DNA of 64,000 nucleotides from Mytilus californianus (taxonomy: Eukaryota): positions 105,462,001-105,526,000 of the forward strand of contig NW_026262581.1 of NCBI RefSeq assembly GCF_021869535.1. The letters run 5' to 3'. Position numbers and translations under genes: made by a program. Numbering within the stretch: the stretch's first letter is position 1; the number at the start of each line of letters is the position of its first letter. This document shows, piece after piece, positions 22,599 through 61,070 of this stretch. Below the pieces are notes generated by a model. The model was not told where the DNA came from, searched no databases, and was given only the letters and a program-made list of their open reading frames with translations.

Positions 22599-25500
22599 TT
22601 AATGTATCAAGTCTTTCAACAAACGAAATGTCCAAACCCAAAAGTCAAAATAACAAAGACGAAATTATCACTGACCTAGATGACGAATCTAAAATTAATG
22701 GAACTAAAGCACATTCATTTCCTGCAAATACAAAAACTTCGAGATCAATAATAAAAGCAACAGACTCATCTTCTCTCAAAAATGGGAATGAAAAATATAA
22801 TGAAAGAAATAGAAAAAAAGAAACAAGTATTCTGACAAGTCCTGACCGCACATTGAAACCTCCGTCGACGACAAAAAAACCACGAAGGCCCGTCAGTGGT
22901 AAAACGACAACAAATGCGAGTAGTACCACAAAAGAAATAAATGGACTCGCTGATGAAGAAGTATCAACAGGTACTCGAACACCTCCTGACCACACTTCAA
23001 GACCTTCGTCGGGGGTAAATAAAACATCAAGGCCCACCAGTGCGAAGACGACATCCACATTAATAGACGATGATGTAAAGACTAGTGGAACAGAAAGTCC
23101 AGTAGTAATGAACAACGAAATAGTATCTAGGAGAACATCAAAATCAAATGAATCGTCAAGACCTTTGAGTGCCAAAGACAACGCAGCAGATCTTCTCCCT
23201 GCAGATGAAAAAGATACATCAAAAACATCTGACACTTTGAATAACATGAATGAGGACCAGACAAAAAATCAATCTGATCTAGGCAAAGAAAATGTGACTG
23301 GGACAACATCGTCGTCGTCTGGTCCACATTCTAGACCTTCTTCAGGAATAGAAGCATCTAAGGTCACCACTGAAATCGAAACCAATGATAAAATACCTGG
23401 AGATTCTCCACCTACAGGAAAATTGTCACCTGTCAATAATGTATCAAGTCCAGTACATAAAGCTAATAAAATATCAAGGACAAGTAGCCCTACCGACACG
23501 AAAATCAGTGACTTAAATGAGGAATTTGAAGTTAAGGAAACTAGAAGACAATCATCTTCTGACAAAATTACAACATCAAGACCAACATCAGGTTCAGGAA
23601 GCGCATCCAGACCAACAAGTGCGATTAAGAACACTAAAGAAATAAATGGACACGTTGATGAAGAAGTATTTACAGGAACTCGAACACCTCCTGACCACAC
23701 ATCAAGACCTTCGTCAGGGATAAATAAAACATCAAGGCCCACAAGTGCAAAGACGACAACCACACAAATAGACAATGATGTAAAGACTAGTGTTACAGAA
23801 GGTCCAATAGTAGTAAACAACGAAAGAGTATCTAGACCAACATCAAAATCAAAGGAATCGTCAAGACCTTCGAGTGCCAAAGACAACGCAGCAGATCTTT
23901 TCCCTGGAGATGAAACAGATACATCAAAAACATCTGACACTTTGAATAACATGAATGAAGATCAGACAAAAGATCAATCTGATCCAGGCAAAGAAAATGT
24001 GACTGGGACAACATCTACGTCGTCTGGTCCACATTCTAGACCTTCTTCAGGAATAGAAGCATCTAAGGTAACCACTGCAATCGAAACCAATGATAAAATA
24101 CCTGGAGATTATTCACCTACAGGAAAATTGTCACCTGTCAATAATGTATCAATTCCAGTACATGAAGCTAATAAAATATCAAGGACAAGCAGCCCTACCG
24201 ACACGAAAATCAGTGACTTAAATGAGGAATTTGAAGTTAAGGAAACTATAAGACAATCATTTTCTGATAAAACTAAAGAAATAAATGGACACGCTGATGA
24301 AGAAGTATTTACAGGTACTCGAACACCTCCTGACCACACATCAAGACCTACGTCCGGGATAAATAAAACATCAAGGCTCACAAGTGCAAAGACGACAACC
24401 ACACAAAAATGCAATGATGTAAAGACTATTGGAACAGAAGGTCCGATAGTCGTAAACAACGAAACAGTATCTAGGCCAACATCAAAATCAAAGGAATCGT
24501 CAAGACCTTCGAGTGCCAAAGACAACGCAGCAGATCCTCTCCCTGCAGATGAAACAGATACATCAAAAACATCTGACACTTTTAATAACATGAATGAAGA
24601 CCAGACAAAAGATCAATCAGATCCAGGCAAAGAAAATGTGACTTGGACAACATCGTCGTCGTCTTGTCCACATTCTAGACCTTCTTCAGAAATAGAAGCA
24701 TCTAAGGTAACCACTGCAATTGAAACCAATGATAAAATATCTGGAGATTCTTCACCTACAGGAAAATTGTCACCTGTCAATAATGAATCAAGTCCAGTAC
24801 ATAAAGCTAATAAAATATCAAGGACAAGTAGCCCTACCGACACGAAAATCAATGACTTAAATGAGAAATTTGAAGTTAAAGAAACTAGAAGACAATCATC
24901 TTCTGACAAAATTACAACATCAAGACCAACATCAGATTCTGGAAGCGCATCCAGACCAACAAGTGCGAGTAAGACCACTAAAGAAATAAATAGACACGCT
25001 GATGAAGAAGCAACTACAGGTACTCGTACACCTCCTGACCACACATCAAGACCTTCGTCAGGGATAAATAAAACATCAAGGCCCACAAGTGCGAAGACGA
25101 CAACCACACAAATAGACAATGATGTAAAGACTAGTGTTACAGAAGGTCCAATAGTACTTAACAACAAAACAGTATCTAGGCCAACTTCAAAATCAAAGGA
25201 ATCGCCAAGACCTTTGAGTGCCAAAGACAACGCAGCAGATCTTCTCCCTGCAGATGAAACAGATACATCAAAAACATCTGACACTTTGAATAACATGAAT
25301 GAGGACCAGACAAAAAATCAATCTGATCTAGGCAAAGAAAATGTGACTGGGACAACATCGTCGTCGTCTGGTCCACATTCTAGACCTTCTTCAGGAATAG
25401 AAGCATCTAAGGTAACCACTGCAATCGAAACCAATGATAAAATACCTGGAGATTCTTCACCTACAGGAAAATTGTCACTTGTCAATAATGTATCAAGTTC

Positions 25501-28500
25501 AGTACATAAAGCTAATAAAATATCAAGGACAAGTAGCCCTACCGACACGAAAATCAGTGACTTAAATGAGGAATTTGAAGTTAAGGAAACTAGAAGACAA
25601 TCATCTTCTGACAAAATTACAACATCAAGACCAACATCAGGTTCAGGAAGCGCATCCAGACCAACAAGTGCGATTAAGAACACTAAAGAAATAAATGGAC
25701 ACGTTGATGAAGAAGTATTTACAGGAACTCGAACACCTCCTGACCACACATCAAGACCTTCGTCAGGGATAAATAAAACATCAAGGCCCACAATTGCAAA
25801 GACGACAACTACACAAATAGACAATGATGTAAAGACTAGTGTTACAGAAGGTCCAATAGTACTAAACAACGAAACAGTATCTAGGCCAACATCAAAATCA
25901 AAAGAATCGTCAAGACCTTCGAGTGCCAAAGACAACGCAGCAGATCTTCTCCCTGCAGATGAAACAGATACATCAAAAACATCTGACACTTTGAATAACA
26001 TAAATGAAGACCAGACAAAAGATCAATCTGATCCAGGCAAAGAAAATGTGACTGGGACAACATCGTCGTCGTCTGGTCCACATTCTAGTCCTTCTTCACG
26101 AATAGAAGCATCTAAGGTAACCACTGCAATCGAAACCAATGATAAAATACCTGGAGATTCTTCACCTACAGGAAAATTGTCACCTGTCAATAATGTATCA
26201 AGTCCAGTACATGAAGCTAATAAAATATCAAGGACAAGTAGCCCTACCGACACGAAAATCAGTGACTTAAATGAGGAATTTGAAGTTAAGGATACTAGAA
26301 GACAATCATCTTCTGACAAAATTACAACATCAAGACCAACATCAGATTCAGGAAGCGCATCCAGACCAACAAGTGCGAGTAAGACCACTAAAGAAATGAA
26401 TGGACACGTTGATGAAGAAGTATTTACAGGTACTCGAACACCTCCTGACCACACATCAAGACCTTTGTCAGGGATAAATAAAACATCAAGGCCCACAAGT
26501 GCAAAGACGACAACCACACAAATAGACAATGATGTAAAGACTAGTGTTACAGAAGGTCCAATAGTAGTAAACAACGAAACAGTATCTAGGCCAACATTAA
26601 AATCAAAGGAATCGTCAAGACCTTCGAGTGCCAAAGACAACGCAGCAGATCTTCTCCCTGCAGATGAAACAGATACATCAAAAACATCTGACACTTTGAA
26701 TAACATGAATGAAGACCAGGCAAAAGATCAATCTGATCCAGGCAAAGAAAATGTGACTAGGACAACATCGTCGTCGTCTGGTGCACATTCTAGACCTTCT
26801 TCAGGAATAGAAGCATCTAAAGTAACCATTGCAATCGAAACAACTGATAAAATACCCGGAGATTCTTCACCTACAGGAAAATTGTTACCTGTCAATAATG
26901 TATCAAGTCCAGTACATGAAGCTAATAAAATATCAAGGACAAGTAGCCCTAGTAACACGAAAATCAGTGACTTAAATGACGAATTTGAAGTTAAGAAAAC
27001 TAGAAGACAATCATCTTCTGACAAAAATAAAACATCAAGACCAACATCAGGCTCAGGAAGCGCAACCAGACCAACAAGTGCGAGTAAGACCATTAAAGAA
27101 ATAAATGGACACGTTGATGAAGTAGTATTTACAGGTACTCGAACACCTCCTAACCACACATCAAGACCTTCGTCAGGGATAAATAAAACATCAAGGCCCA
27201 CAAGTGCAAAGACGACATCCACACAAATAGACAATGATGTAAAGACTAGTGGTACAGAAGGTCCAATAGTAGTAAACAACGAAACAGTATCTAGGCCAAC
27301 ATCAAGATCAAAGGAATCGTCAAGACCTTCGAGTGTCAAAGACAACGCAGTAGATCTTCTCCCTACAGATGAAATAGATACATCAAAAACATCTGACACT
27401 TTGAATAACATGAATGAAGACCAGACAAAAGATCAATCTGATCCAGGGAAAGAAAACGTGACTGGGACAACATCGTCGTCGTCTGGTCCACAATCTAGAC
27501 CTTCTTCAGGAATAGAAGCATCTAAGGTAACTACTGGAATCGAAACCAATGATAAAATACCTGCAGATTCTTCACCTACAGGAAAATTGTCACCTGTCAA
27601 TAATGTATCAAGTCCAGTACATGAAGCTTATAAAATATCAAGGACAAGTAGCCCTACCGACACGAAAATCAGTGACTTAAATGAGGAATTTGAAGTTAAG
27701 GAAACTAGAAGACAATCATCTTCTGACAAAATTACAACATCAAGACCAACATCAGGTTCAGGAAGCGCATCCAGACCAACAAGTGCGATTAAGAACACTA
27801 AAGAAATAAATGGACACGTTGATGAAGAAGTATTTACAGGAACTCGAACACCTCCTGACCACACATCAAGACCTTCGTCAGGGATAAATAAAACATCAAG
27901 GCCCACAAGTGCAAAGACGACAACCACACAAATAGACAATGTTGTAAAGACTAGTGTTACAGAAGGTCCAATAGTACTAAACAACGAAACAGTATCTAGG
28001 CCAACATCAAAATCAAAGGAATCGTCAAGACCTTCGAGTGCCAAAGACAACGCAGCAGATCTTTTCCCTGCAGATGAAACAGATACATCAAAAACATCTG
28101 ACACTTTGAATAACATGAATGAAGACCAGACAAAAGATCAATCTGATCCAGGCAAAGAAAATGTGACTGGGACACCATCTACGTCGTCTGATCCACATTC
28201 TAGACCTTCTTCAGGAATAGAAGCATCTAAGGTAACCACTGCAATCGAAACCAATGATAAAATACCTGGAGATTCTTCACCTACAGGAAAATTGTCACCT
28301 GTCAATAATGTATCAAGTCCAGTACATGAAGCTAATAAAATATCAAGGACAAGTAGCCCTACCGACACGAAAATCAGTGACTTAAATGAGGAATTTGAAG
28401 TTAAGGAAACTATAAGACAATCATCTTCTGACAAAATTAGAACATCAAGACCAACATCAGATTCAGGAAGCGCATCCAGACCAACAAGTGCGATTAAGAA

Positions 28501-31500
28501 CACTAAAGAAATAAATGGACACGCTGATGAAGAAGTATGTACAGGAACTCGAACACCTCCTGACCACACATCAAGACCTTCGTCAGGGATAAATAAAACA
28601 TCAAGGCCCACAAGTGCAAAGACGACAACCACACAAATAGACAATGATGTAAAGACTAGTGTTACAGAAGGTGCAATAGTAGTAAACAACGAAACATTAT
28701 TTAGACCAACATCAAAATCAAAGGAATCGTCAAGACCTTCGAGTGCCAAAGACAACGCAGCAGATATTCTCCCTGCAGATGAAACAGATACATCAAAAAC
28801 ATCTGACACTTTGAATAACATGAATGAAGACCAGACAAAAGATCAATCTGATCCAGGCAAAGAAAATGTGACTGGGACAACATCGTCGTCGTCTGGTCCA
28901 CATTCTAGACCTTCGTCAGGAATAGAAGCATCTAAGGTAACCACTGCAATCGAAACCAATGATAAAATACCTGGAGATTCTTCACCTACAGGAAAATTGT
29001 CACCTGTCAATAATGAATCAAGTCCAGTACATGAAGCTAATAAAATATCAAGGACAAGTAGCCCTACCGACACGAAAATCAGTGACTTAAATGAGGAATT
29101 TGAAGTTAAGGAAACTATAAGACAATCATCTTCTGACAAAATTAGAACATCAAGACCAACATCAGGTTCAGGAAGCGCATCCAGGCCAACAAGTGGAATT
29201 AAGAATACTAAAGAAATAATTCGACACGCTGATGAAGAAGTATTTACAGGAACTCGAACACCTCCTGACCACACATCAAGACCTTCGTCAGGGATAAATA
29301 AAACATCAAGGCCCACAAGTGCAAAGACGACAACCACACAAATAGACCATGATGTAAAGACTAGTGTTACAGAAGGTCCAATAGTAGTAAACAACGAAAC
29401 AGTATCTAGACCAACATCAAAATCAAAGGAATCGTCAAGACCTTCGAGTGTCAAAGACAACGCAGCAGATATTCTCCCTGCAGATGAAACAGATACATCA
29501 AAAACATCTGACACTTTGAATAACATGAATGAAGACCAGACAAAAGATCAATCTGGTCCAGGCAAAGAAAATGTGACTGGGACAACATCTACGTCGTCTG
29601 GTCCACATTCTAGACCTTCTTCAGGAATAGAAGCATCTAAGGTAACCAATGCAATCAAAACTTATGATAAAATACCTGGAGATTCTTCACCTACAGGAAA
29701 ATTGTCACCTGTCAATAATGTATCAAGTCCAGTACATGAAGCTAATAAAATATCAAGGACAAGTAGCCCTACCGACACGAAAATCAGTGACTTAAATGAG
29801 GAATTTCAAGTTAAGGAAACTAGAAGACAATCATCTTCTGACAAAATTACAACATCAAGACCAACATCAGATTCAGGAAGCGCATCCAGACCAACAAGTG
29901 CAAGTAAGACTACTAAAGAAATAAATGGACCCGCAGATGAAGAAGTATTTACAGGTACTCGAACACCTCCTGACCACACATCAAGACCTTCGTCAGGGAT
30001 AAATAAAACATCAAGGCCCACAAGTGCGAAGACGACAACCACACAAATAGACAATGATCTAAAGACTAGTGTTACAGAAGGTCCTATAGTAGAAAACAAC
30101 AAAACAGTATCTAGGCCAACATCAAAATCAAAGGAATCGTCAAGACTTTCGAGTGTCAAAGACAACGCAGCAGATCTTTTCCCTGCAGATGAAACAGATA
30201 CATCAAAAACATCTGACACTTTAAATAACACGAATGAAGACCAGACAAAAGATCAATCTGATCCAGGCAAAGAAAATGTGACTGGGACAACATCGTCGTC
30301 GTCTAGTCCACATTCTAGACCTTCTTCAGGAATAGAAACATCTAAGGTAACCACTGCAATCGAAACCAATGATAAAATACCTGGAGATTCTTCACCTACA
30401 GGAAAATTGTCACCTGTCAATAATGTATCAAGTTCAGTACATGAAGCTAATAAAATATCAAGGACAAGTAGCCCTACCGACACGAAAATCAGTGACTTAA
30501 ATGAGGAATTTGAAGTTAAGGAAACTAGAAGACAATCATCTTCTGACAAAATTAGAACATCAAGACTAACATCAGGTTCAGGTAGTGCATCCAGACCAAC
30601 AAGTGCGATTAAGAACACTAAAGAAATGAATGGACACGCTGATGAAGAAGTATTTACAGGAACTCGAACACCTCCTGACCACACACCAAAACCTTCGTCA
30701 GGGATAAATAAAACATCAAGGCCCACAAGTGCAAAGACGACAACCACACAAATAGACAATGTTGTAAAGACTAGTGTTACAGAAGGTCCAATAGTACTAA
30801 ACAACGAAACAGTATCTAGGCCAACATCAAAATCAAAGGAATCGTCAAGACCTTCGAGTGCCAAATACAACGCAGCAGATCTTCTCCCTGCAGATGAAAC
30901 AGATACATCAAAAACATCTGACACTTTGAATAACATGAATGAAGACCAGACAAAAGATCAATCTGATCCAGGGAAAGAAAATGTGACTGGGACAACATCG
31001 TCGTCGTCTGGTCCACATTCTAGACCTTCTTCAGGAATAGAAGCATCTAAGGTAACCACTGCAATCGAAACCAATGATAAAATACCTGGAGATTCTTCAC
31101 CTACAGGAAAATTGTCACCTGTCATTAATGAATCAAGTCCAGTACATGAAGCTAATAAAATATCAAGGACAAGTAGCCCTACTGACAAGAAAATCAGTGA
31201 CTTAAATGAGGAATTTGAAGTTGAGGAAACTAGAAAACAATCATCTTCTGACAAATTTACAACATCAAGACCAACATCAGGTTCAGGAAGCGCATCCAGA
31301 CCAACAAGTGCGAGTAAGACCATTAAAGTAATAAATGGACACTCTGATGAAGAAGTAATTACAGGTACTCGAACCCCTCCTGGCCACACATCTAGACCTT
31401 CGTCAGGGATAAATAAAACATCAAGGCCCACAAATGCGAAGACGACAACCACACAAATAGACAATGATGTAAAGACTTGTGTTACAGAAGGTCCAATAGT

Positions 31501-34500
31501 ACTAAACAACGAAACACTATCTAGGCCAACATCAAAATCAAAGGAATCGTCAAGACCTTCGAGTGCCAAAGACAACGCAGCAGATCTTTTCCCTGCAGAT
31601 GAAACAGATACATCAAAAACATCTGACACTTTGAATAACATGAATGAAGACCAGACAAAAGATCAATCTGATCCAGGCAAAGAAAATGTGACTGGGACAA
31701 CATCTTCGTCGTCTGGTCCACATTCTAGACCTTCTTCAGGAATAGAAGCATCTAAGGTAACCACTGCAATCGAAACCAATGATAAAATACCTGGAGATTC
31801 TTCACCTACAGGAAAATTGTCACCTGTCAATAATGTATCAAGTCCAGTACATGAAGCTAATAAAATATCAAGGACAAGTAGCCCTACCGACACGAAAATC
31901 AGTGACTTAAATGAGGAATTTGAAGTTAAGGAAACTATAAGACAATCATCTTCTGACAAAATTAGAACATCAAGACCAACATCAGGTTCAGGAAGCGCAT
32001 CCAGACCAACAAGTGCGATTAAGAACACTAAAGAAATAAATGGACACGCTGATGAAGAAGTATTTACAGGAACTCGAACACCTCCTGACCACACATCAAG
32101 ACCTTCGTCAGGGATAAATAAAACATCAAGGCCCACAAGTGCAAAGACGACAACCACACAAATAGACAATGATGTAAAGACTAGTGTTACAGAAGGTGCA
32201 ATAGTAGTAAACAACGAAATATTATCTAGACCAACATCAAAATCAAAGGAATCGTCAAGACCTTCGAGTGCCAAAGACAACGCAGCAGATATTCTCCCTG
32301 CAGATGAAACAGATACATCAAAAACATCTGACACTTTGAATAACATGAATGAAGACCAGACAAAAGATCAATCTGATCCAGGCAAAGAAAATGTGACTGG
32401 GACAACATCGTCGTCGTCTGGTCCACATTCTAGACCTTCGTCAGGAATAGAAGCATCTAAGGTAACCACTGCAATCGAAACCAATGATAAAATAACTGGA
32501 GATTCTTCACCTACAGGAAAATTGTCACCTGTCAATAATGAATCAAGTCCAGTACATGAAGCTAATAAAATATCAAGGACAAGTAGCCCTACTGACAAGA
32601 AAATCAGTGACTTAAATGAGGAATTTGAAGTTGAGGAAACTAGAAAACAATCATCTTCTGACAAATTTACAACATCAAGACCAACATCAGGTTCAGGAAG
32701 CGCATCCAGACCAACAAGTGCGAGTAAGACCATTAAAGTAATAAATGGACACTCTGATGAAGAAGTAATTACAGGTACTCGAACCCCTCCTGGCCACACA
32801 TCTAGACCTTCGTCAGGGATAAATAAAACATCAAGGCCCACAAATGCGAAGACGACAACCACACAAATAGACAATGATGTAAAGACTTGTGTTACAGAAG
32901 GTCCAATAGTACTAAACAACGAAACAGTATCTAGGCCAACATCAAAATCAAAGGAATCGTCAAGACCTTCGAGTGCCAAAGACAACGCAGCAGATCTTCT
33001 CCCTGCAGATGAAACAGATACATCAAAAACATCTGACACTTTGAATAACATGAATGAAGACCAGACAAAAGATCAATCTGATCCAGGGAAAGAAAATGTG
33101 ACTGGGACAACATCGTCGTCGTCTGGTCCACATTCTAGACCTTCTTCAGGAATAGAAGCATCTAAGGTAACCACTGCAATCGAAACCAATGATAAAATAC
33201 CTGGAGATTCTTCACCTACAGGAAAATTGTCACCTGTCATTAATGAATCAAGTCCAGTACATGAAGCTAATAAAATATCAAGGACAAGTAGCCCTACCGA
33301 CACGAAAATCAGTGACTTAAATGAGGAATTTGAAGTTAAGGAAACTATAAGACAATCATCTTCTGACAAAATTAGAACATCAAGACCAACATCAGGTTCA
33401 GGAAGCGCATCCAGACCAACAAGTGCGATTAAGAACACTAAAGAAATAAATGGACACGCTGATGAAGAAGTATTTACAGGAACTCGAACACCTCCTGACC
33501 ACACATCAAGACCTTCGTCAGGGATAAATAAAACATCAAGGCCCACAAGTGCAAAGACGACAACCACACAAATAGACAATGATGTAAAGACTAGTGTTAC
33601 AGAAGGTGCAATAGTAGTAAACAACGAAATATTATCTAGACCAACATCAAAATCAAAGGAATCGTCAAGACCTTCGAGTGCCAAAGACAACGCAGCAGAT
33701 ATTCTCCCTGCAGATGAAACAGATACATCAAAAACATCTGACACTTTGAATAACATGAATGAAGACCAGACAAAAGATCAATCTGATCCAGGCAAAGAAA
33801 ATGTGACTGGGACAACATCGTCGTCGTCTGGTCCACATTCTAGACCTTCGTCAGGAATAGAAGCATCTAAGGTAACCACTGCAATCGAAACCAATGATAA
33901 AATACCTGGAGATTCTTCACCTACAGGAAAATTGTCACCTGTCAATAATGAATCAAGTCCAGTACATGAAGCTAATAAAATATCAAGGACAAGTAGCCCT
34001 ACTGACAAGAAAATCAGTGACTTAAATGAGGAATTTGAAGTTGAGGAAACTAGAAAACAATCATCTTCTGACAAATTTACAACATCAAGACCAACATCAG
34101 GTTCAGGAAGCGCATCCAGACCAACAAGTGCGAGTAAGACCATTAAAGTAATAAATGGACACTCTGATGAAGAAGTAATTACAGGTACTCGAACCCCTCC
34201 TGGCCACACATCTAGACCTTCGTCAGGGATAAATAAAACATCAAGGCCCACAAATGCGAAGACGACAACCACACAAATAGACAATGATGTAAAGACTTGT
34301 GTTACAGAAGGTCCAATAGTACTAAACAACGAAACAGTATCTAGGCCAACATCAAAATCAAAGGAATCGTCAAGACCTTCGAGTGCCAAAGACAACGCAG
34401 CAGATCTTCTCCCTGCAGATGAAACAGATACATCAAAAACATCTGACACTTTGAATAACATGAATGAAGACCAGACAAAAGATCAATCTGATCCAGGGAA

Positions 34501-49500: not shown

Positions 49501-51007
49501 AAGTAGCCCTACCGACACGAAAATCAGTGACTTAAATGAGGAATTTGAAGTTAAGGAAACTAGAAGACAATCATCTTCTAACAAAATTACAACATCAAGA
49601 CCAACATCAGGTTCAGGAAGCGCATCAAGACCAACAAGTGCGAGTAAGACTACTAAAGAAATATATGGACACGTTGATGAAGAAGTATTTACAGGTACTC
49701 GAACACCTCCTGACCACACATCAAGACCTGCGTCAGGGATAAATAAAACATCAAGGCCCACAAGTGCAAAGACGACAACCACACAAATAGACAATGATGT
49801 AAAGACTAGTGTTACAGAAGGTCCAATAGTAGGAAACAATGAAACAGTATCTAGACCAACATCAAAATCAAAGGAATCGTCAAGACCTTCGAGTGCCAAA
49901 GACAACGCAGCAGATCTTCTCCCTGCAGATGAAACAGATACATCAAAAACATCTGACACTTTGAATAACATGAATGAAGACCAGACAAAAGATCAATCTG
50001 ATCCAGGCAAAGAAAATGTGACTGGGACAACATCGTCGTCGTCTGGTCCACATTCTAGACCTTCTTCAGGAATAGAAGCATCTAAGGTAACCACTGCAAT
50101 CGAAACCAATGATAAAATACCTGGAAATTCTTCACCTACAGGAAAATTGTCAACTGTCAATAATGTATCAAGTCCAGTACATGAAGCTAATAATATATCA
50201 AGGACAAGTAGCCCTACCGACACGAAAATCAGTGACTTAAATGAGGAATTTGAATTTAAGGAAACTAGAAGACAATCATCTTCTGACAAAATTACAACAT
50301 CAAGACCAACATCAGGTTCAGGAAGTGCATCCAGACCAACAAGTGCGAGTAAGACCACTACAGAAATAAATGGACCCGCTGATGAAGAAGTATTTACAGG
50401 TACTCGAACACCTCCTGACCACACATCAAGACCTTCGTCGGGGATAAATAAAACATCAAGGCCAATCAGTGCAAAGACGACAACATCAAAATCAAAGGAA
50501 TCGCCAAGACCATCGAGTGCCAGTAACAGCGCAGCAAATCTTATGTCTGAAGATGAAACAGATACATCAAAAACATCAAAGCAAGTGCATGTAGTTAATA
50601 AAATATCAAGGACAAATAGTCCAGACGACACGAAAACCAGTGACTTCAAGGACAAATTTGAAGTTAAGGAAACTAGAAGACAATCATCTTCTGACAATAT
50701 TACAACATCAAAACGAACTTCAGGTTCAAAAAGCGCATCAACCCCTAAAAGTAGAAGTGAGAACACTAAAGAAATAAATGGACACGCCGATGAAGAATTA
50801 TATACATTAACTGAAACATCTATTGACCAGGTATCAAGACGTCCTCGTCAAGTGAGTAAAACTCAAAGGCCAATTGAAGAAAACAAACAAATGGTTACAG
50901 AGGTAAAAGACAAACCTGAAGATGTAGAAACACGTAGAAGGTCTTCATCATCAGACAATATAAGAACATCAACTGGCACAACTATAATTGGAAATGATGA
51001 GATAGAG
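22599..51007 (+). CDS. Giant coding exon A: Ser/Thr-rich, predicted-disordered tandem-repeat polypeptide (~9,460 codons from ATG 22628); function unknown
   Basis: The frame is stop-free from 22556 to 51019 (track ORF 22586..51022 uses a TTG start). The first in-frame ATG is at 22628, with a possible phase-1 acceptor ttgtcttctttag| at 22598. A donor GAG|GTAAAC follows 51007 on a codon boundary. A short unique N-terminal stretch precedes ~40 copies of a 235-aa unit, about one-third S+T by manual count. Confidence 0.85.
22928..50790 (+). repeat. Coding tandem array, 705-bp unit: 39 units (unit 2 is 66 bp short), a 408-bp deleted unit 40, and a remnant
   Basis: Unit starts (T-K-E-I-N-G register) lie at 22928, 23633 and 24272, then every 705 bp to 50357, with a remnant at 50765. 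The 705-bp periodicity is mirrored in the minus-strand ORF track. Confidence 0.97.
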
Positions 51008-51250
51008 GTAAACACTATATAATTATATTCATCTTCTAGAGTAAAAAATCAAATACTCAAAATTTAGAATTTAATAAGATATTTATCATCGCACTGCAAT
51101 GACCAACATTACAAAATGTAATTGATGTACAATATTACCAAATGTCAAAATTCGTTTCAAAGTTAATCGAATTTATTTTTAAATGTACCGTCTACCGCAC
51201 AGAGCATTATACAGTTACATTGGTGTTAATTTGTTTATTGAAATTATAAA

Positions 51251-51459
51251 GAGAGAAAAGAAACCCAAGGAGCCATAAAAAATCCAATAAAAAAACCCAA
51301 CACTATGGCAAAAAAGAAAAATGACGAAAAGACACGTCACCAACAAAACAATTTACAAAAAAAAATTAAGATTGAGCAGCACATAAGAATCGCATAAAAA
51401 ATCTGGGGTAAACTCAGGTGCTCCGAAAGGGTAAGCACGTCCTACTCCACTAATGCACC
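51251..51459 (+). mobile_element. Family A, degenerate copy in the intron
   Basis: Carries actcaggtgctccgaaagggtaagcacgtcctactccac plus upstream similarity to the other copies. Confidence 0.6.
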
Positions 51460-53382
51460 TTTACACCGAACAATGTTTATATCAATTATTTTCACAAAAA
51501 AAGAAACAAAAACTCTAAATCACCCAACACAGCTTCCAACACTAATCACTTTTAGTCGTATATTGCATGGTATATAGTTTTTACACGAACGGTACATACT
51601 TTTGTTTTATCTTTGTCTATATTTCAAGAAATAGGAATAATATGCAATAATTCATTGTTTAAATGGAACTTTTGTGAATTTATTGGGCTATGCAAAAAAA
51701 TATTAGAGTTTCGTTTTTTTACTTTTCAATCTATACACTATTCCGATTTTCTTTTCTTTTCAAATATCTGCCGTTGTAATAAATAACTTTGTCCGTCCCA
51801 TAGTGATAATTCGTAGTTAATAAAACAGCATTCAAGAGAAACCTTCATTTTGCTGCTTCTAACAAATACAATATGTTTAAAACTAGTTACACTTCAAGGC
51901 TCGATTGTTCAATTATGACAGCTACGTATTTTAAATATAAAACATGTATTTGTTGAAGCGATTTTAAGATCTCATTTTGGAAAATGAAAGTCGTTGATCT
52001 CATGTGAAGCATAAAATATAATGAGATCCCTCAAATAGGCTTATATTGGATACTTTTTTATATGTACTTTTTGGCGGGGTATTTATTTCCGATTATTTCG
52101 CAGTAGGTATATTTTGTGAAAATATATACACACGAATAGAAATACAGCTTCAAATGACATACTTTTTCCGTGTTCAAAGTAACTATGCATGGATGATCAT
52201 AAGGGTAAAATTTCATTGTATTGTAATCAAGATATATAGAACAATAAATGGCACTGGCTATTTTCAGACTCTCTGCCCATAAAAATCTTTTATCTTTATC
52301 GATTCTTTTATATCGACCTTTTTCAATAGCTAACTGATGAGCACTAATTCTAAATTGAGTTAGGATTTTTCTATACTGAAATTTATTAACTTGACATAAA
52401 TATGCTTCCCTTTTGAAATTGTTTTAAATTTAAAATAAGTGTGCAATGTTTCCTTTTTTAACATTTGCATTATCATCTATAGTATTTTTTCAGTAAATCC
52501 TATATCTTCGAATCAATGTTTTTTTTTAACTTTTTTAACGTCAAAACTTTTTATATCAACATCAATACATATCAAAATATAAACAATACTAGAATACCAA
52601 GATGACTTATTACATTTGTAAGTGTCCAAACTTGTGACCAGGGCTTGCTTTAACAAAAGACCTTCTTCTAAACTATTAGTTCTTTATAATTTTTTTAGAA
52701 TTGAACAAATATTGTCAATATGCAATGGAGTACGACCTAGCTCTCCAATAACAGCTAAATTACATGATTTTTTATTTACTCCAAGAATGTTTTTGTAGAA
52801 CTTTAAACTTAAGTTTTCGCAATCAAACTTACTAATTTTTTTCTCAATTTCAAAGAGACTGTCTGTTTGACATTACGATACTTTAAAAATGCATTTCCCC
52901 AAATTTCTGAGCTATATGTTAAATTCGACTTTATCGTGGGGTCAAAGATATGTAAACAACTATCAATTTTCGGGATGTTTTCAACAAAAATTCTTTTTAA
53001 CTTGAAGAAAGCCAGTAACTTTCTTGATCAAATCATATCAAACCATAGAAAACTTCCAGAAGCAGAAAAACATCACACCCAAATATTTATAATTCTTGAC
53101 ATTTTCAATGGGTTCACCATCAAAACAAATGTTACATTTAATCATTTTACCACCTTTATTAAAATTTACATTTTTTTTTAAAGATTAACCTGAATACACC
53201 AGTTTTACAATATTCTTCTAGTTTATTTAAACATCTAATCAATCGTGATTGACTAGCAGAAAGAAGCCCAACATCATCGGCATACATTAAACATTTAGTT
53301 TTGTACTATCTAATTCAGTTGGTAGACATTAATCATAAAAAATACACGGTATATCATTGACAAATGTCTAACTCCAATGTTA

Positions 53383-54220
53383 GGCCGTGTTCACATTGAG
53401 CTAAACTCGGTGTGGTGTAAGTGTACTCTACACTTAAAACTAAACTCAATTACGTTCTCATTGATAAAAATCACTGTTAACATGTAGTTTGAAACAGGTT
53501 TTGACTACATACAGTCGATAGACAATGTAGGCCTTGTGTGGGTTAAGTGTTCATAAAACAAGATATCAAGAGCGTGGATTTTATTGTGAATATTTAAGGA
53601 AGTTAAATATATTGAATAAATATTATTATGATAATTCTGTGAGTTAAAATATTTTCCTATTTTTATGACAAACACTCCAAAAATTGCTCCTTTAAAAACA
53701 TTATTAAATTTAATATCCTTAGTGGGCCATTTGATTTTCAGCGGGAGGATTTTTTTTTTCTGATAGAATATTCATTTTACACAGGTTGATAGCACTTTTC
53801 ATTTATTTAGCGCGAAAATTATTTTCACTTTTTTCAACTTTTTTTTGCAAAGTCCTGCATTTTGAAGGACAAAATATTCATTTTCATTATGTCGTGGACA
53901 AGGTAATTTTTACAGTTAGTACCAGTCCATACTATTCATTTCCATAATCACCATATGTGTGACTGGGGAATATAGTAATATGGTTACCTAGATCTTCTTC
54001 CGATCGACCGTAAAACCTTTCCAAAGTAGAGCGTCCGGTTGGCTACGTCTCGGACGGCCTCTATTAAAGGACCTACCAATTGTATTTATTGTGAATTTGT
54101 TCTCATCCTGAACATGTATGAAATACAGATGAGAAAAATTTTAATGTGAAACCAGTGTCCACTACATTAAACTAATTGTTAACAAGTTTACAGTACGCAG
54201 CGTTTGGTGTGAACACGGCC
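53383..54220. mobile_element. PIF/Harbinger-type (Tourist-like) MITE, 838 bp
   Basis: It has perfect 13-bp TIRs, GGCCGTGTTCACA (53383-53395) and TGTGAACACGGCC (54208-54220), each flanked by TTA (53380-53382, 54221-54223). A TTA/TAA TSD is diagnostic of PIF/Harbinger. No transposase ORF is present. Confidence 0.85.
53985..54125 (+). mobile_element. SINE-like fragment nested in the MITE
   Basis: acctaccaattgtatttat...ttctcatcctgaacatgtatgaaata matches the reverse complement of 12625-12720. The family assignment is from recall only. Confidence 0.45.
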
Positions 54221-55400
54221 TTAGCTTTTAATTTATCATTTAAACGAACGTATCCCAATGTTTTGGAGTTTTAACAACAAGGCTTCATGCACTACAGAAT
54301 CAAATGCTTTCCTAAAATCTACAAAATATGTATATAAATAAGTTTTGTTTGCGATAGAATTTTCGGCTTGCCATATTAGTGAGTACTTTTTAATTTACAC
54401 AAAACAAAACTAACTTAATGACATCTTTTATTGACTGATTTTTCCAAAGACCTATGAAACTAATAGTCAGCAAAAATTCTCTATCAGTCAAGGTTACTAA
54501 GTTAGATGGTCAATTGAAAGGTATATACTATTAATGAAATACATATATAAATCTTTCCAATAACTAATCGTTACATAGTTAAGTGCTTTCGGCCAATTAA
54601 ATTGTATTATTTTCATGATCTTTATAGTGAAGATGTTTATAAAGCAGGGTTTGTCCTATTGTTTACTTTCAGTTCAAATAAAAACATATTTAAAGTAGTT
54701 TCAACTGCTTCGCATTGACATGATTTCTGATTGAAATTGATTAGATATTGAAGTTGGAAATAAACAGAAAATCCAGATAGGTTGATTTGGAATTAATACT
54801 AATATCAAGTAAAGATTATGCAAAGCACAAACTGAATCATTTTTCATGCTTATCATAAAATATGTATATAGATTCTACCACACCATTCCTTTGATTACGA
54901 TATTTATTCACTCGAGGTAGTTACATTTTTAAACTAAAAAAAAATCGAGGCTCGTCGAGCATGTTATTTTTTTAATTGAACTATCGAGAGTAAATAAATA
55001 CTGTAGTCAACCTGGTGAGGTAATATAATATGTTTATCTGACGATTAAATGGAAAATTTTCAAATGGATATGGCAGTAAATAACAGAAGACAAATTTTAA
55101 TAACGTCTGAAATAAAGTTAAAAAAACAATTATGTATTTGATTTCATTTATAACTGGCTCTAAAATGAATTCCTGGCTCCCCTCATGACATCTGATAAAT
55201 CATTTGGTGAAACAAAAGAAAAGATAACTTCCTGTAACGGCCCCTGATATGAAACCCCATAGAAAAACAAGAGTGCACACGCTGAAATGTCTCGCCTTCT
55301 TTACTAATCATTGATATTATGTTGATAGTCCTAAATATAAAGCTTTATTACAACTGTCACATAAACTTAACATTAACCAAGTAAACTAAACATTGACCAA

Positions 55401-56310
55401 TGAACCATGAAAATGAGGTCAAGGTCAGATGAACCATGCTAGGCAGGCATGTACAGCTAACAATTCTTCCATACAACAAATATAGTTGACCTATTGCTTA
55501 TAGTTTAAGAAAAACAGACGAAACACAAAAACTTAACACTGAGCAATGAACCTTGAAAATGAGGTCAAGGTCAAATAAAACCTGCGTGACTGACATATAG
55601 ATCATAAAATATTTCCATACACCAAATATAGTTGAACTATTGCATATAGAATTAGAAAAAAAGACCAAAACTCAAAAACTTAACTTTGACCACTGAACCA
55701 TGAAAATGAGGTCAAGGTAAGATGACCCCTGCCAGCTAGACATGTACACCTTACAATCATTCCATACACCAAATATAGCTGACCTATTGCATGCAGTATT
55801 AGAAAAAAAGACCAAAACTCAAAAACTTAACTTTGACCACTGAACCATGAAAATGAGGTCAAGGTCAGATGACACCTGCCAGCTAGACATGTACACCTTA
55901 CAATCATTCCATACACCAAATATAGTAGACCTATTGCATACAGTATAAGAAAAACAGACCAAAACACAAAAACTTAACTATAACCACTGAACCATGAAAA
56001 TGAGGTCAAGGTCAGATGACACCTGCCAGTTGGACATGTACACCTTACATTCCTTCCATACACCGAATATACTAGACCTATTGCTTATAGTATCTGAGAT
56101 ATGGACTTGACCACGAAAACTTAACCTTGTTCACTGATCCATGAAATGAGGTCGAGGTCAAGTGAAAACTGTCTGACGGGCATGAGGACCTTGCAAGGTA
56201 CGCACATACCAAATATAGTTATCTTATTACTTATAATAAGAGAGAATTTAACATTACAAAAAATCTGAACTTTTTTTTCAAGTAGTCACTGAACCATGAA
56301 AATGAGGTCA
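55401..56310 (+). repeat. ~147-bp satellite-like tandem array (7 cores) inside the HINE
   Basis: The motif tgaaccatgaaaatgaggtcaaggtca recurs at ~55401, 55547, 55694, 55841, 55988, 56135 and 56290. Confidence 0.92.
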
Positions 56311-56427
56311 AGGACATTGGACATGTGACTGATGGAAACTTCGTAACATGAGGCATCCATATACAAAGTATGAAGCATCCAGGTCTTCCATCTTCTAAAA
56401 TTTAAAGCTTTTAAGAAGTTAGCTAAC

Positions 56428-56466
56428 GCCGCCGCCGCCGCCGTAGCCGCCGCCGCCGCCGCCGCC
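56428..56466. repeat. (GCC)5-GTA-(GCC)7 microsatellite, part of the HINE
   Basis: Read directly from the sequence. It explains the poly-Ala and poly-Arg short minus-strand ORFs. Confidence 0.95.
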
Positions 56467-56663
56467 GGACCGCTATCCCTATGTCGAGCTTTCTGCGACA
56501 AAAGTTGCAAGCTCGACAAAAATGAAAGAAAACAAATAGAAATAAACATACTCTGCACTGCACAAGAACACCAATTGTCCTTTTTTTATTAATCAATTGA
56601 ATGAAGATTTTCTTTGACAATGTAAATGTTTATTGAAGAAAATATTCATATCATATCTTCCAG

Positions 56664-59600
56664 GAGTTAAATAACTTTACGATGATCGAGGTAGCAGGAA
56701 AAGAAAATGCCACAACGACTACCAATAATAAAATGAGGGCAATAGAAGACGACAAAAATACATGCATTTCACAAATTGAAGATTTGCGAGAAGAGCAAGG
56801 ACTGTTACGAACAAAAATAGAAAGAAAACAGGAAAAGATCATTCAGTTACAAAAAGATTTTGATGAAATGAAATTGGACAACAAAAGGATTTCAGAAGAA
56901 GAACAAGAAATAAAACATCATGTTGAAAAGCTAGAATCAGAAATACTAGTTTTTACTAATAATTTATCTCAAGTAAGTGAGAACACAGATGTCGTATTGA
57001 GTCAGTTTCATGAATTAAGAGTACATATTGAAAACGAAAGTAAAATACACGATAGACAACATGACAACAAATATAGCAAGGAGTTTATTAATGATACTCA
57101 AACATTAGACACTGGAATGATGGAAGAGACGAATAACGGTATTCATCATATTAACAAAGAAAAAGTAAAAGGAGAAAAGTGTCACAATGCACAAGAAGAT
57201 GTTAGAAAATATGATGAACAGCAAAAGAGTGCATATCAAGAATTAGATAACAGAATCAAAGAGTCTAATGAATTGTTAAAAAATTATCACGAATTTGATA
57301 AAACGCTTCACGCTACAAATCATCAACATTTAATTGAGATAAAGCAAACCATTGAGAATATAGGAACACACAATGAAAAACATCGAGAACCGGAGCAAAA
57401 TAGTCAAGAAAACAATCAAAGCGCTGGAGAAAAGAATACACTTATTTATGAAATGAAAACACAATTTATTGAATTAAAAGAATTTATAGAAAACGACATG
57501 ATTGTAAAACACAAACAATACAAAGATACTACCAACTTTCATGAAAGTAGTTTTGCAGAAGTAAAATTTTCTTCTGCAAAAAATGTTGATGATGATAGAA
57601 ACTATCATGACCAACAACGGAACGAACTGCGACAACTGCGACAGGCAGTAGAGGGCAGCATTAAAATTCATGAAGCAGAGGGAGAGAATAACAGAAAAGC
57701 TCATGATATCCAACTTAAAGAGTTCCATGAGTTAAAGAATATAGTAGAAATTAGAATGAAAGATATTCAAAGTCGTCACACAGAAGAAGAGGGAGATGAT
57801 CACTACGTTCTCAAATACATTAATCACATCAAAGAACACATGAACGTGTTTGAACAGACACTTAAAGATGATAGAATATCACATGAGTGTCAGACTCAAG
57901 AATTTAGAGAATTACGACAACTGCTGGAGAATGATAGACGTGTAAATAAGGAGTTAGTTGAAGAGAAAGAAAAACATAACGGCGAATGGAAAGACGAAAT
58001 GAAAGCAATTAAGACAGCTATAGAAAGTGATATCAAAATGCATGAAGAACATAGCAAATTGTTCGGTCAATACCAGAAAAGCCAAGAACAAGAATTCCAT
58101 GAACTCAAGAAAGCAGTAGTAAATTCTCAGGCAAACAAAGTTCACAAGGACGCCCAACCAGGAGAACATACCGATAGATTTGTCAATACCTACAGTCAGG
58201 TAGATCAGTTGAAACAATTTTTGTCAAATAATAGCGAATCCCAAAACAAACAAATAGAGGACTTAAAAGTTCTCAAACAAACAATAGAAATTGATATGAA
58301 GCTAAGGGAAGAACAAAGGGAGAATGACAGAAAAGCTCTTAATGAAAATATGAATGAGATAAAACATAAGCTTGGATCTATCTTAGTAGCCTGTGATAAA
58401 CAGCACGTGGCACCTACCATTGAACAAAGTAATGAAAGGCGGGACAACCTTGACAATGGAAATCAAGGGGAGGTTATAACTTATCATTTTAATATAATAA
58501 AAAATATGATTGAAAAAGATATGCTTCTCCAAGATAATAGAAGAGAGGCTGAAAGAATACACAACAAAAAACAGCAAATGGAAACACAAAAGTTGATTAC
58601 AATATTAGAAAATGACAGAGAGTTAAGAGCAGAACAACGTCAAGATTTCTTAAATCTAAAGGAAAAACTTGACAGTAATAGAAAATTTCAAGAAAACCAG
58701 GTGGAGGTTCAGGAATCATATCATAATAATTTGAAAGAGTTAGAAAAAACTTTTGAACGTTATACGTCATTACAAGTCAAAACAAGCAGTCCAGACGACT
58801 CAAAACAACAAGGTTATATTTCCAATACTATTCCTAATAGCATGAACAGCCATTTTGAGGATCTGAATCAAAGTAGTGAACGTAGAATAATACTTCAAGA
58901 CGAACAACTGCGTGATGGAAACATGATTCAAGAACAACTACAAAACACATTACAGAAGTTGAATGGTAATATAGGTGATAATATTAAACATCTGAAAGAT
59001 ATGAATGACAGACAAGAAATCTTGCATGGAATAGAACTTAATGAATTTATAGAAATAAAACAAAAAATTGATGCTAGCAACAAATATCAAGAAACACAAA
59101 AACAATCGGTACAAGAAATGATAGGAAAAATGGAAAATGGAAACAAGCAACTACAAAAGACGTTGCTGGTTGATAGAAATTTCTACGAAGAACAACGAGA
59201 GAATGATCGAAAATACTATACAGAATTACGACAGAGTGAAACAAGAATTACTGGAAATCTGTATGAAGATTATAGTCGCTCACAACAAGAACTGAAAAAC
59301 GTCAGTATGGAACTACATACTGAAACTAAAAAATGCTTAACAGGTAGAATTACAGCAGTACTTGATGTGTGTCAAGAAACATCTGAAATAGTAAAAAGTC
59401 TAGACAAGAGACCTCTTGCTGCTATTAAGCAAACTGCAGACAGTGCACCAGTTGTACACGATTACGTCGAAAGAATAGACAACCATTTTTATGAATTGAA
59501 ACATACAATGGACAAAGACAGAAAACGACAAGAAAAACAACATGATGAAAAATTGAAATTGAAATCGGAGCAAAGAGAACACAAGAAGAAAATCAAAGAA

Positions 59601-60620
59601 AAACATAGAGAGGAAGATAAAAAATCCCAAGAGGAGTTAAGAAAACAGGAAAACCAACTAAGGGAAAACCAAATTGAAGAGATGCAAATATTGAGATTAA
59701 CTGTTGAAAATGACAAAAGAATTCAAGGTAAACAGCAAGAGGAAACCACAAGGTTAATAAAGAAAAACAACAAGGATATATTGGATTTGAAACAAGCGAT
59801 CGATGATGAAAGACAGCTACGAGAAAGGCATAGACGGGAGACGAGGCTGAGTAAAGATGAAAGTAAACAAAATGATACAAAATGGATAGAAAAATTATGT
59901 GATGATACTTACATAATGAAAACCCAGTTTCAAGAACTGAATGAAGTTTTTACAAGAGATCGAAAGCTTTATGAAAGACAGAGAGAAGAAGATATATTGT
60001 ATCGCGTAGAGCAAAGAGATCATCAGAAAACTATCCATGAAAAACAACGAGAAGAATTTCAGTTATTAAAGGAAGAACTAGCAAAAGGCAGAAAATATCA
60101 GGAAAATCAGCGCGAGGACATTGCAAAAATGAGAACAAGATTTGAAGAACTAAAACAAACCATTGACTGGGATAGAAATTTCCAGGATAAACAAAAGGAT
60201 AACGAAAGGAAAAATCTGGACGAACAACGGCAGATTGACAGGAGACTTTATTACCAACAAAAAGAACAGTTTCAAGAATTAATGAAAAGTGTTGAGAATG
60301 ATAGAAAAATAAATAAAGAAAATGTGCAAGAAATGAATGGCAACATAAGCCAAATAATAAAAGCTGTCAAAAAGCCCAAATCCTTGTCTAAACCCGAAAA
60401 GAAAAGTATGGTTGCGGAAAAGGAATTCAGGGTAAAGAAGCGAAAGACGACTGAAAAGGTCTTTCTTCAAAGGCGTAAAGGTATAGAAATTGTAGTCCTG
60501 CCAAAAATTCCGTCAAACATTACCAGCAGAGCACGCGAAGACTTGCACAAAGAAAAAACAAAGAAAAAAACAACGAAAACAACCAAGAAGAAAAAGAAGA
60601 AAAAGAAATTAATTTTATGA
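56664..60620 (+). CDS. Exon B: E/K/Q/N/D-rich coiled-coil region (1,318 aa) with Lys-rich C-terminus; probable last coding exon
   Basis: Track ORF 56682..60620 extends six codons upstream to the acceptor. It has a helical charged composition with very little Pro or Gly, recurring F-x-E-L-K-x-x-I-E-x-D-R-like motifs, and ends TKKKKKKKKLIL*. No specific gene recognised. Confidence 0.85.
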   Translation, partial: ELNNFTMIEVAGKENATTTTNNKMRAIEDDKNTCISQIEDLREEQGLLRTKIERKQEKIIQLQKDFDEMKLDNKRISEEEQEIKHHVEKLESEILVFTNNLSQVSENTDVVLSQFHELRVHIENESKIHDRQHDNKYSKEFINDTQTLDTGMMEETNNGIHHINKEKVKGEKCHNAQEDVRKYDEQQKSAYQELDNRIKESNELLKNYHEFDKTLHATNHQHLIEIKQTIENIGTHNEKHREPEQNSQENNQSAGEKNTLIYEMKTQFIELKEFIENDMIVKHKQYKDTTNFHESSFAEVKFSSAKNVDDDRNYHDQQRNELRQLRQAVEGSIKIHEAEGENNRKAHDIQLKEFHELKNIVEIRMKDIQSRHTEEEGDDHYVLKYINHIKEHMNVFEQTLKDDRISHECQTQEFRELRQLLENDRRVNKELVEEKEKHNGEWKDEMKAIKTAIESDIKMHEEHSKLFGQYQKSQEQEFHELKKAVVNSQANKVHKDAQPGEHTDRFVNTYSQVDQLKQFLSNNSESQNKQIEDLKVLKQTIEIDMKLREEQRENDRKALNENMNEIKHKLGSILVACDKQHVAPTIEQSNERRDNLDNGNQGEVITYHFNIIKNMIEKDMLLQDNRREAERIHNKKQQMETQKLITILENDRELRAEQRQDFLNLKEKLDSNRKFQENQVEVQESYHNNLKELEKTFERYTSLQVKTSSPDDSKQQGYISNTIPNSMNSHFEDLNQSSERRIILQDEQLRDGNMIQEQLQNTLQKLNGNIGDNIKHLKDMNDRQEILHGIELNEFIEIKQKIDASNKYQETQKQSVQEMIGKMENGNKQLQKTLLVDRNFYEEQRENDRKYYTELRQSETRITGNLYEDYSRSQQELKNVSMELHTETKKCLTGRITAVLDVCQETSEIVKSLDKRPLAAIKQTADSAPVVHDYVERIDNHFYELKHTMDKDRKRQEKQHDEKLKLKSEQREHKKKIKEKHREEDKKSQEELRKQENQLRENQIEEMQILRLTVENDKRIQGKQQEETTRLIKKNNKDILDLKQAIDDERQLRERHRRETRLSKDESKQNDTKWIEKLCDDTYIMKTQFQELNEVFTRDRKLYERQREEDILYRVEQRDHQKTIHEKQREEFQLLKEELAKGRKYQENQREDIAKMRTRFEELKQTIDWDRNFQDKQKDNERKNLDEQRQIDRRLYYQQKEQFQELMKSVENDRKINKENVQEMNGNISQIIKAVKKPKSLSKPEKKSMVAEKEFRVKKRKTTEKVFLQRRKGIEIVVLPKIPSNITSRAREDLHKEKTKKKTTKTTKKKKKKKKLIL

Positions 60621-60860
60621 TAATTTAGCCATGTACTAATAGTAAAATGGGACTAATAACATTTGTTTCATATGTTGATTCATGTACATGTAGATATATG
60701 CGCTTGATTTGAAATTATTGTGAAGTCTTTGGTAATATTTGATTTATATATACTATTATTATTCCAAAACATATGATTTATATTTACGTAATTAAACAGA
60801 TTTTAAATAGTGACTCGTGAATATAAAATCTTCAAATAATAGAATAACGGGTCTTTTTGA

Positions 60861-61070
60861 TCAAGAGAGGCGAAAGATATTAAAAGGGGTATGTAAACTC
60901 ATAAGTCGAAAACAAACTGACAATGCCATGGCAAAAATCGAAAAACGACGAAAAAACTAACAACAGTACACAAAACACAACATAGAAAACTAAAGACTGA
61001 GCAACACGAACCCCACCAAAACACGGGGTGATCTCAGGTGCTCCGGAAAGGTAAGCAGATCCTACTCCAC
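60861..61070 (+). mobile_element. Family A copy downstream of exon B
   Basis: Aligns over ~200 bp with 1016-1220. Confidence 0.75.

Follow-up and report, generated by a model that had tools for sequence, protein, structure and literature searches.

Two very large open reading frames (ORFs) lie one behind the other on the plus strand of a 64,000-nucleotide stretch of the Mytilus californianus genome, and the question raised by this locus is whether they encode two proteins or the two ends of a single giant one. The stretch, here called the window, matches contig JAKFGE010000001.1 of assembly GCA_021869535.1 with 0 mismatches over 43,375 bases. ORF A (22586..51022; 9,478 codons counted from a TTG) contains an in-frame ATG at 22628, the first after the nearest upstream in-frame stop (22553), and ORF B (56682..60620; 1,312 aa) follows 5.6 kb downstream. 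A donor, GATAGAG/GTAAAC (the slash marks the exon boundary, here and below), is located at 51007/51008, four codons before the stop of ORF A, and an acceptor, CTTCCAG/GAGTTA, at 56663/56664, six codons before the ATG of ORF B. Both sites are in phase 0, and joining them yields a product of 9,460 + 1,318 = 10,778 aa (1,161 kDa; pI, 5.95). The coordinates that had been proposed from the letters of the DNA without database searches (the sequence-only reading) all agreed on rechecking. The locus is probably one gene with two coding exons, the 28.4-kb exon A (22628-51007) and exon B (56664-60620), that encodes a protein of 10,778 aa and 1.16 MDa.

The splice was examined with reads and contigs from four runs, aligned to positions 50840-56830. 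Two of the runs, X16 and X18, are separate M. californianus samples of one study, with ∼41 Mb of contigs each, and both contain a contig that joins 51005 to 56662 with a skip of 5,656 nt and GT..AG ends; with its cut at +2, this joint is the 51007/56664 junction that had been predicted. The depth of the junction (16.2 in X16 and 22.5 in X18) is close to the summed depth of the allelic exon B contigs that start at 56662, two per run (∼23.5 and ∼21.7, respectively); therefore, most of the exon B RNA in these two samples is joined to exon A. X16 and X18 are treated as RNA because depth is 0 at 51040-51239 and in most unique intron bins. There is likewise no sign of exon A ending just after 51022, and a scan of 51008-51700 for the polyadenylation signals ATTAAA and AATAAA found a single AATAAA, at 51286, where depth is about zero. 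The segment 50354..51007, which ends at the donor, has 65% of its sampled words in X16. A Logan contig (L002) with intron sequence 5' of exon B was considered as evidence of intron retention and dropped; it is uninformative because it ends near the end of the aligned M. californianus sequence and comes from a library of unrecorded type. That the junction is real and the two ORFs belong to one gene is highly probable.

The public annotation presents the locus quite differently. RefSeq XP_052105846.1 ("mucin-5AC-like", 1,233 aa) runs from ATG 22628 to 28497, with its last residues out of frame, and XP_052105858.1 ("interaptin-like", 2,002 aa) starts at an internal methionine at 30626 and includes the junction as GNDEIE/ELNNFT. 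The junction is already in RefSeq; the single giant gene is absent from it. XP_052105858.1 also removes 31986..50315, i.e., 18,330 nt or exactly 26 x 705 nt, and both ends of this skip fall at an identical CAG/GTTCAG site that occurs at matching positions of the two units and consists of a weak donor (GTTCAG) and a purine-rich acceptor with no pyrimidine tract. This internal intron was rejected, given that its length is an exact multiple of the period, its sites are poor, and the skipped units are stop-free. It is best read as a pseudo-intron, apparently created when a GT-AG gap was forced on the alignment of collapsed repeat transcripts. Both RefSeq names, "mucin-5AC-like" and "interaptin-like," are owed to composition and not to homology. 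It had been forecast that automated annotation would split or mislabel this gene, and RefSeq does both. The current models are wrong, and XP_052105846.1 and XP_052105858.1 should be merged and renamed; expression or proteomic work based on them would misassign reads and peptides.

At a G+C content of ∼39%, a 28.4-kb open frame cannot be due to chance; the remaining two plus-strand frames hold 13 and 30 stops per unit. Relative to the unit consensus, 38 units carry 245 distinct variants (each counted once), distributed 78/88/79 over the codon positions, and the nonsynonymous-to-synonymous count among units is 185:59 versus 178.6:55.5 expected (omega ∼0.97). None of these 245 variants produces a stop in the actual sequence, compared with 10.9 expected (P = 1.5e-5); the sole consensus-relative "stop" variant is offset by a second change in its codon. 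In units 14-39, which RefSeq treats as an intron, there are 0 stops versus 6.4 expected (P = 0.0014). No frameshifting indels were found in 28 kb of array; for comparison, the noncoding intronic 147-nt satellite has 1-2% indels. Between species, the ratio of nonsynonymous to synonymous substitution rates (dN/dS) is 0.65 for the unit consensus; exon B, compared with M. galloprovincialis, has a ratio of 0.33 overall and 0.15 over its final third. The depletion of stops and indels, taken with the omega values, therefore indicates that the frame, length, and composition of the array are kept and its residues hardly so, with the tail under conventional constraint. The whole array looks coding, and selection appears to keep all of it open.

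The array itself is highly regular. The spacing between anchor positions is 235 aa in 38 of 39 cases, and the exception (213 aa) is a 66-nt in-frame deletion in unit 2. Mean identity among units is ∼94 to 95%, and higher-order, near-identical blocks recur at a lag of 2 (units 13-20), 4 (units 23-30), or 11 (units 9-11 versus 20-22) units; the longest exact repeats inside the array are ∼1.14 kb. Serine, threonine, and proline account for 17.6%, 14.8%, and 7.4% of the residues, respectively (∼40% jointly), and the net charge is near zero. Among the motifs in the array are 239 occurrences of SRP[ST]S, 199 of [ST]P, and 21 of RRQSS; the sequence-only reading had given DNAADLLPADETDTSK as an example of a unit peptide. 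A 227-aa ORF also runs antisense through almost every unit (22645-50766, minus strand), present in most units because one minus frame has one stop per 705 nt. These ORFs were rejected as genes: they are apparently a by-product of the composition of the sense strand and have no other support.

The array and the tail are adjacent and on the same strand in M. edulis as well as in M. galloprovincialis. In M. edulis (GCA_905397895.1, CAJPWZ010001218.1), ∼26.5 units with a 705-nt period are followed, 3.2 kb downstream, by the orthologue of the tail, with a conserved donor (GNDQIE/GTAAAC) and acceptor (..TTACAG/GAGTTAAAT). Across the two species, the donor reads GN-D-x-IE/GTAAAC and the acceptor ..ACAG/GAGTTAAAT, and both the phase and the six codons before the exon B ATG are conserved. 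The frame switches repeatedly in the array and the exon B orthologue of the M. edulis assembly, likely through assembly indel error, and the locus is cut there into at least 8 gene models, at least 7 of which were recovered by accession (CAG2209932-34 and 36-38). The older M. galloprovincialis assembly has a collapsed array upstream of an intact tail gene. In the newer one (GCA_965363235.1, OZ263145.1), the intron is 3,165 nt long, and the sequence fetched upstream of it stays open from its first base to the donor, over at least 3,493 codons. RefSeq isoform X1 of this species (XP_076077259.1, 1,429 aa) includes the junction, as GNDQIE/ELNNLT, with the last 138 aa of the array only; within the 10 kb fetched upstream, these 138 aa are all that is annotated as coding, and the model (LOC143047844) thus lacks at least 10 kb of open frame. 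The sequence-only reading had named beforehand three outcomes that would speak against a single gene, namely, separate transcription of the two ORFs with no junction reads, exon A transcripts polyadenylated just after 51022, and orthologues of the two parts that are unlinked, and none of the three was found.

The predicted product is intracellular in character. Its N-terminus (MSKPKSQNNKDE..) is hydrophilic, with a mean Kyte-Doolittle hydropathy of -1.46 over the first 25 residues; no signal peptide was found by a hydropathy scan, which is not a dedicated predictor, and no membrane segment was found either, the maximum 19-residue hydropathy in the whole protein being 0.62. The protein is predicted to be intracellular because it has neither. 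Cysteine amounts to 0.1% of exon A and 0.5% of exon B. AlphaFold models of the unit (23 unit sequences) contain no secondary structure (mean predicted local distance difference test [pLDDT], 44), so the arm is predicted to be disordered. In exon B, E, K, Q, and R are abundant and proline is scarce (0.8%); at low confidence, it is modeled as nine helices of 38 to 164 residues that take up most of its length, followed by ∼85 nonhelical residues. It contains a degenerate recurring module, hydrophobic-x-E-L-K-x-x-hydrophobic-E-x-D-R...E-x-Q-R-E-x-D-R-K, and its internal self-similarity score is 69, compared with a shuffle maximum of 45. The sequence-only reading had called this part a coiled coil. 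Its long helices are indeed predicted, but a Fourier analysis of the heptad lent no support to a classical coiled coil, and because the heptad periodicity is weak, exon B is called here a segmented helical rod, not a proven coiled coil; it may instead comprise single charged helices or helical hairpins. The C-terminal KKRK motif and the run of eight lysines are nearly invariant in three aligned Mytilus sequences. The computed contour length of the arm is up to ∼3.4 µm, and the rod measures ∼0.19 µm.

These features suggest that the protein serves inside the cell as a giant tether or spacer. In this scheme, copies would associate through the conserved C-terminal helical rod, with the polybasic tail as an anchor to an anionic surface, such as microtubules, chromatin, or a membrane. 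The disordered, phosphorylatable arm of ∼9,300 aa (∼1 MDa) would then act as a length-selected entropic spacer or brush in which the exact residues barely matter. This specific mechanism is tentative, and we would sooner bet against it in its details. It is quite conceivable, if short of an even chance, that the gene is a genus-restricted orphan that grew to megadalton size in Mytilus through a satellite-like exon, with selection acting on length and bulk properties to produce a rod-anchored molecular ruler or entropic brush. That the full-length 10,778-aa product, which would need an mRNA of ∼32 kb, is made as one chain is rather likely, translation from end to end being inferred.

Several points weigh against this account. 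The record gives no library kind for X16 and X18, so that their RNA status is judged by behavior. The short side of the junction contigs is 30 letters, one under the 31-letter bridging rule; this is the overlap that 31-mer unitigs should have where they stop at an allelic branch, and the match falls exactly at the acceptor in both samples. The RNA run of raw reads (X20) has zero depth on both exons and is hence uninformative on splicing, and in 12 further runs labeled as M. californianus the sampled words are almost absent; because of both, expression is taken to be limited to some tissue or stage. The expressing M. californianus runs are four (X16 to X19), all from one study of 2021. The RefSeq model that includes the junction is not independent evidence, since RefSeq was probably built on the same public RNA data. 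The read and contig evidence covers the region of the junction, and that for the 10,778-aa product is indirect, comprising the open frame and the depletion of stops and indels, part of which (that of stops) could be explained by recent amplification of units. The M. galloprovincialis RefSeq isoform X2 (1,291 aa) starts at the exon B ATG, and a tail-only product may also exist. In exon B, Fourier power at 3.5 residues (the heptad) is weak and the mean pLDDT of the AlphaFold model is low (51). Finally, the proposed mechanism is drawn from composition and architecture.

Among the competing explanations, that of two independent genes, a 5' mucin-like one and a 3' coiled-coil one, would make the junction a rare read-through chimera. 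RefSeq does give two models here, and the tail is a protein by itself in the annotation of M. edulis and in the older one of M. galloprovincialis, but the joint occurs in two samples at a depth like that of exon B, with no read-through past the donor and about zero depth at the one AATAAA beyond it. Moreover, both splice sites are conserved across species, as are their phase and the six codons that precede the exon B ATG, and ORF A stays open through the interval that separates the two RefSeq models. The two-gene explanation is largely refuted and has very little probability left. A different possibility is one locus without a megadalton protein, at which transcripts of a few units (∼1,400 to 2,000 aa) arise by CAG/GTTCAG splicing or from internal starts, and the tail is perhaps made alone from ATG 56682. 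Every unit offers such a GT..AG pair at an equivalent place, XP_052105858.1 and XP_076077259.1 start within the array and isoform X2 at the exon B ATG, and the full-length product is deduced from the open frame. However, the absence of stops and frameshifts from the 26 skipped units would be unexplained if they were intronic; neither the in-unit donor nor the acceptor is a good one, and the skipped length is a whole number of periods, as is expected for collapsed short-read transcripts placed on a repeat. XP_052105846.1 ends in out-of-frame residues, and the junction depth in X18 about equals that of exon B. Short products as the sole output of the locus are thus unlikely.

The length of the array might also be an assembly artefact, through overexpansion or collapse, in which case 10,778 aa would be wrong and the gene still real. 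The assembly was built from HiFi reads with an N50 of 14 kb at ∼45x coverage (PMC9710001), and the array, at 28.4 kb, is twice that N50; units 13-20 and 23-30 form near-identical higher-order blocks, and since mussels are highly heterozygous (2.73%; PMC9710001), alleles may vary in copy number. Conversely, most units differ by ∼5%, and with exact repeats no longer than ∼1.14 kb, 14-kb reads can be placed uniquely. The independent M. edulis assembly has ∼26.5 units, and the new M. galloprovincialis assembly has more than 14.8 in the 10 kb fetched. Given these repeat and read lengths, the copy number in the assembly is credible, although it is a single-assembly figure, and a materially wrong array length is distinctly improbable. 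The single giant gene, as the sequence-only reading had it (at least 10,780 aa), is supported, the full product by the open frame and by the depletion of stops and indels.

The features of the locus are listed in the table.

Table. Features of the giant two-exon gene and its surroundings, in window coordinates.
Feature	Coordinates	Strand	Basis
Putative 5' untranslated part of exon A	22340..22627	+	Acceptor-like motif at 22339/22340 and in-frame stop at 22553; inferred
Start codon and N-terminal lead-in (99 aa; decayed unit)	22628..22924	+	RefSeq XP_052105846.1 has the same ATG; alignment of residues 81-99 with a unit's end
39 tandem units of 705 nt (235 aa), S/T/P-rich	22925..50353	+	Repeat analysis
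Truncated 40th unit and diverged tail ending ..GNDEIE at the donor	50354..51007	+	Contigs in X16 and X18
Intron, 5,656 nt, GT..AG, phase 0	51008..56663	+	X16/X18 joint; junction in RefSeq XP_052105858.1; conservation in Mytilus
High-copy dispersed repeat within the intron, outside the gene product	55240..56640	.	Tandem Repeats Finder (TRF); read depth
Predicted helical rod of exon B	56664..60365	+	Low-confidence AlphaFold secondary structure; self-similarity; dN/dS
Nonhelical polybasic C-terminal tail (KKRK, eight-K run, ..LIL) and stop codon	60366..60620	+	Sequence; AlphaFold
Two candidate ATTAAA polyadenylation-type signals, 171 and 259 nt past the stop	60791..60884	+	Pattern scan

Upstream of the start codon, a polypyrimidine tract at 22300-22345 leads to TAG/AAT at 22339/22340, ∼290 nt 5' of the ATG. 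This acceptor-like motif and its flanks are well conserved in M. galloprovincialis and suggest an upstream, noncoding 5' exon. Several ATGs lie between the motif and ATG 22628, and a short upstream ORF of 9 codons runs from ATG 22428 to a stop at 22455, with a further TAA at 22553. In the older M. galloprovincialis assembly, the ORF begins MNKMNEDKTKDQ.. at the start of the array, and the homologous M. californianus stretch (22428-22628) is decayed; it therefore seems that translation starts at a different codon in each of the two species, inside a degenerate first unit.

The intron also contains repeats of its own. A 147-nt tandem array (55383-56218, identified by TRF) is located inside the dispersed repeat, over which depth reaches hundreds to thousands in all four runs. 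These reads come from other copies, because most are only 90 to 99% alike. In the stranded raw-read run X20, the signal over this repeat is ∼40-fold strand-biased (581 versus 13), and it looks like a transcribed satellite or a family resembling miniature inverted-repeat transposable elements. A shorter intronic element at 54040-54240 (depth up to 128, all four runs), whose reads differ from the window at fixed positions, is probably a fragment of another dispersed repeat.

Searches for relatives returned little beyond the genus. Pfam gave no families on the N-terminus, the unit, or the tail of exon A (E ≤ 0.1) or on exon B (E ≤ 10), and a sequence search of the PDB yielded no more than a marginal match to a coiled coil over 60 residues (E = 0.05). 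In the ESM Atlas, no match exceeded 0.74, and the clusters were unrelated. An exhaustive HMMER search of the last 1,200 residues against 1.84 billion representatives returned the Mytilus cluster only, and no giant relatives of the array (5,200 to 16,500 aa, judged on the first 1,500 residues) were found in a collection of 5.8 billion proteins. A literature search on "interaptin-like," with or without Mytilus, found nothing relevant. By these searches, the gene appears to be restricted to Mytilus. If the full chain is made, it is among the largest proteins predicted in any mollusc and, if confirmed, among the largest animal proteins with no homologue outside one genus. It would be a clear case of a lineage-restricted gene that reached megadalton size via satellite-like amplification in a coding exon. 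Divergence of its copies is neutral at the level of amino acids, yet stops and frameshifts are removed, so that nature provides here a clean test of whether selection acts on how long a disordered region is and on its composition.

Comparison with known systems places the gene more exactly. Of the two names given by RefSeq, mucin-5AC is matched in its S/T/P-rich tandem repeats, i.e., in composition and not by homology; the mussel protein lacks a signal peptide and VWD, C8, TIL, or cystine-knot domains, contains hardly any cysteine in exon A, and is joined to a rod of intracellular type. Interaptin (Dictyostelium abpD) shares a long charged helical rod, but the mussel protein has no calponin-homology actin-binding domain, ends in a polybasic tail instead of a membrane segment, and shows no detectable homology. 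Futsch/MAP1B, a giant microtubule-associated protein of neurons, also carries many tandem repeats in a row and would be plausible as a functional analogue should the polybasic tail bind microtubules; the search for domains detected none of the MAP1 homology regions, and the repeats differ in length and composition. Ki-67 (MKI67) has tandem, phosphorylatable repeats of ∼122 aa encoded in a single large exon and a basic C-terminal anchor, and it acts as a brush by steric and electrostatic means. The mechanism proposed here, with a disordered arm attached to a basic anchor, matches this. As to nuclear location, the mussel protein has only a KKRK motif; no FHA or PP1-binding region and no homology were detected in it, and Ki-67 lacks a long helical rod.

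AHNAK (desmoyokin) is an intracellular protein of ∼600 to 700 kDa with no signal peptide, built of ∼128-aa tandem units in one giant intronless exon between distinct ends. The mussel gene has this gene architecture in common with it, as well as the difficulty of annotation. It differs in the absence of sequence similarity, in its predicted disordered unit of 235 aa, in its helical C-terminal rod of ∼1,200 aa, and in being ∼1.7x larger; Pfam found neither units of the ∼128-aa AHNAK type nor a PDZ domain. Of the "titin/AHNAK/futsch-scale" architecture envisaged in the sequence-only reading, the AHNAK-like gene architecture stands, whereas homology to AHNAK or MAP1 was not found. The gene fits an architectural kind that is not a homology family, that of giant, single-exon, tandem-repeat intracellular proteins in which the units are near-identical, the exon is kept open, and secretion signals are absent, and it is a new example of this known kind, not a new kind of system.

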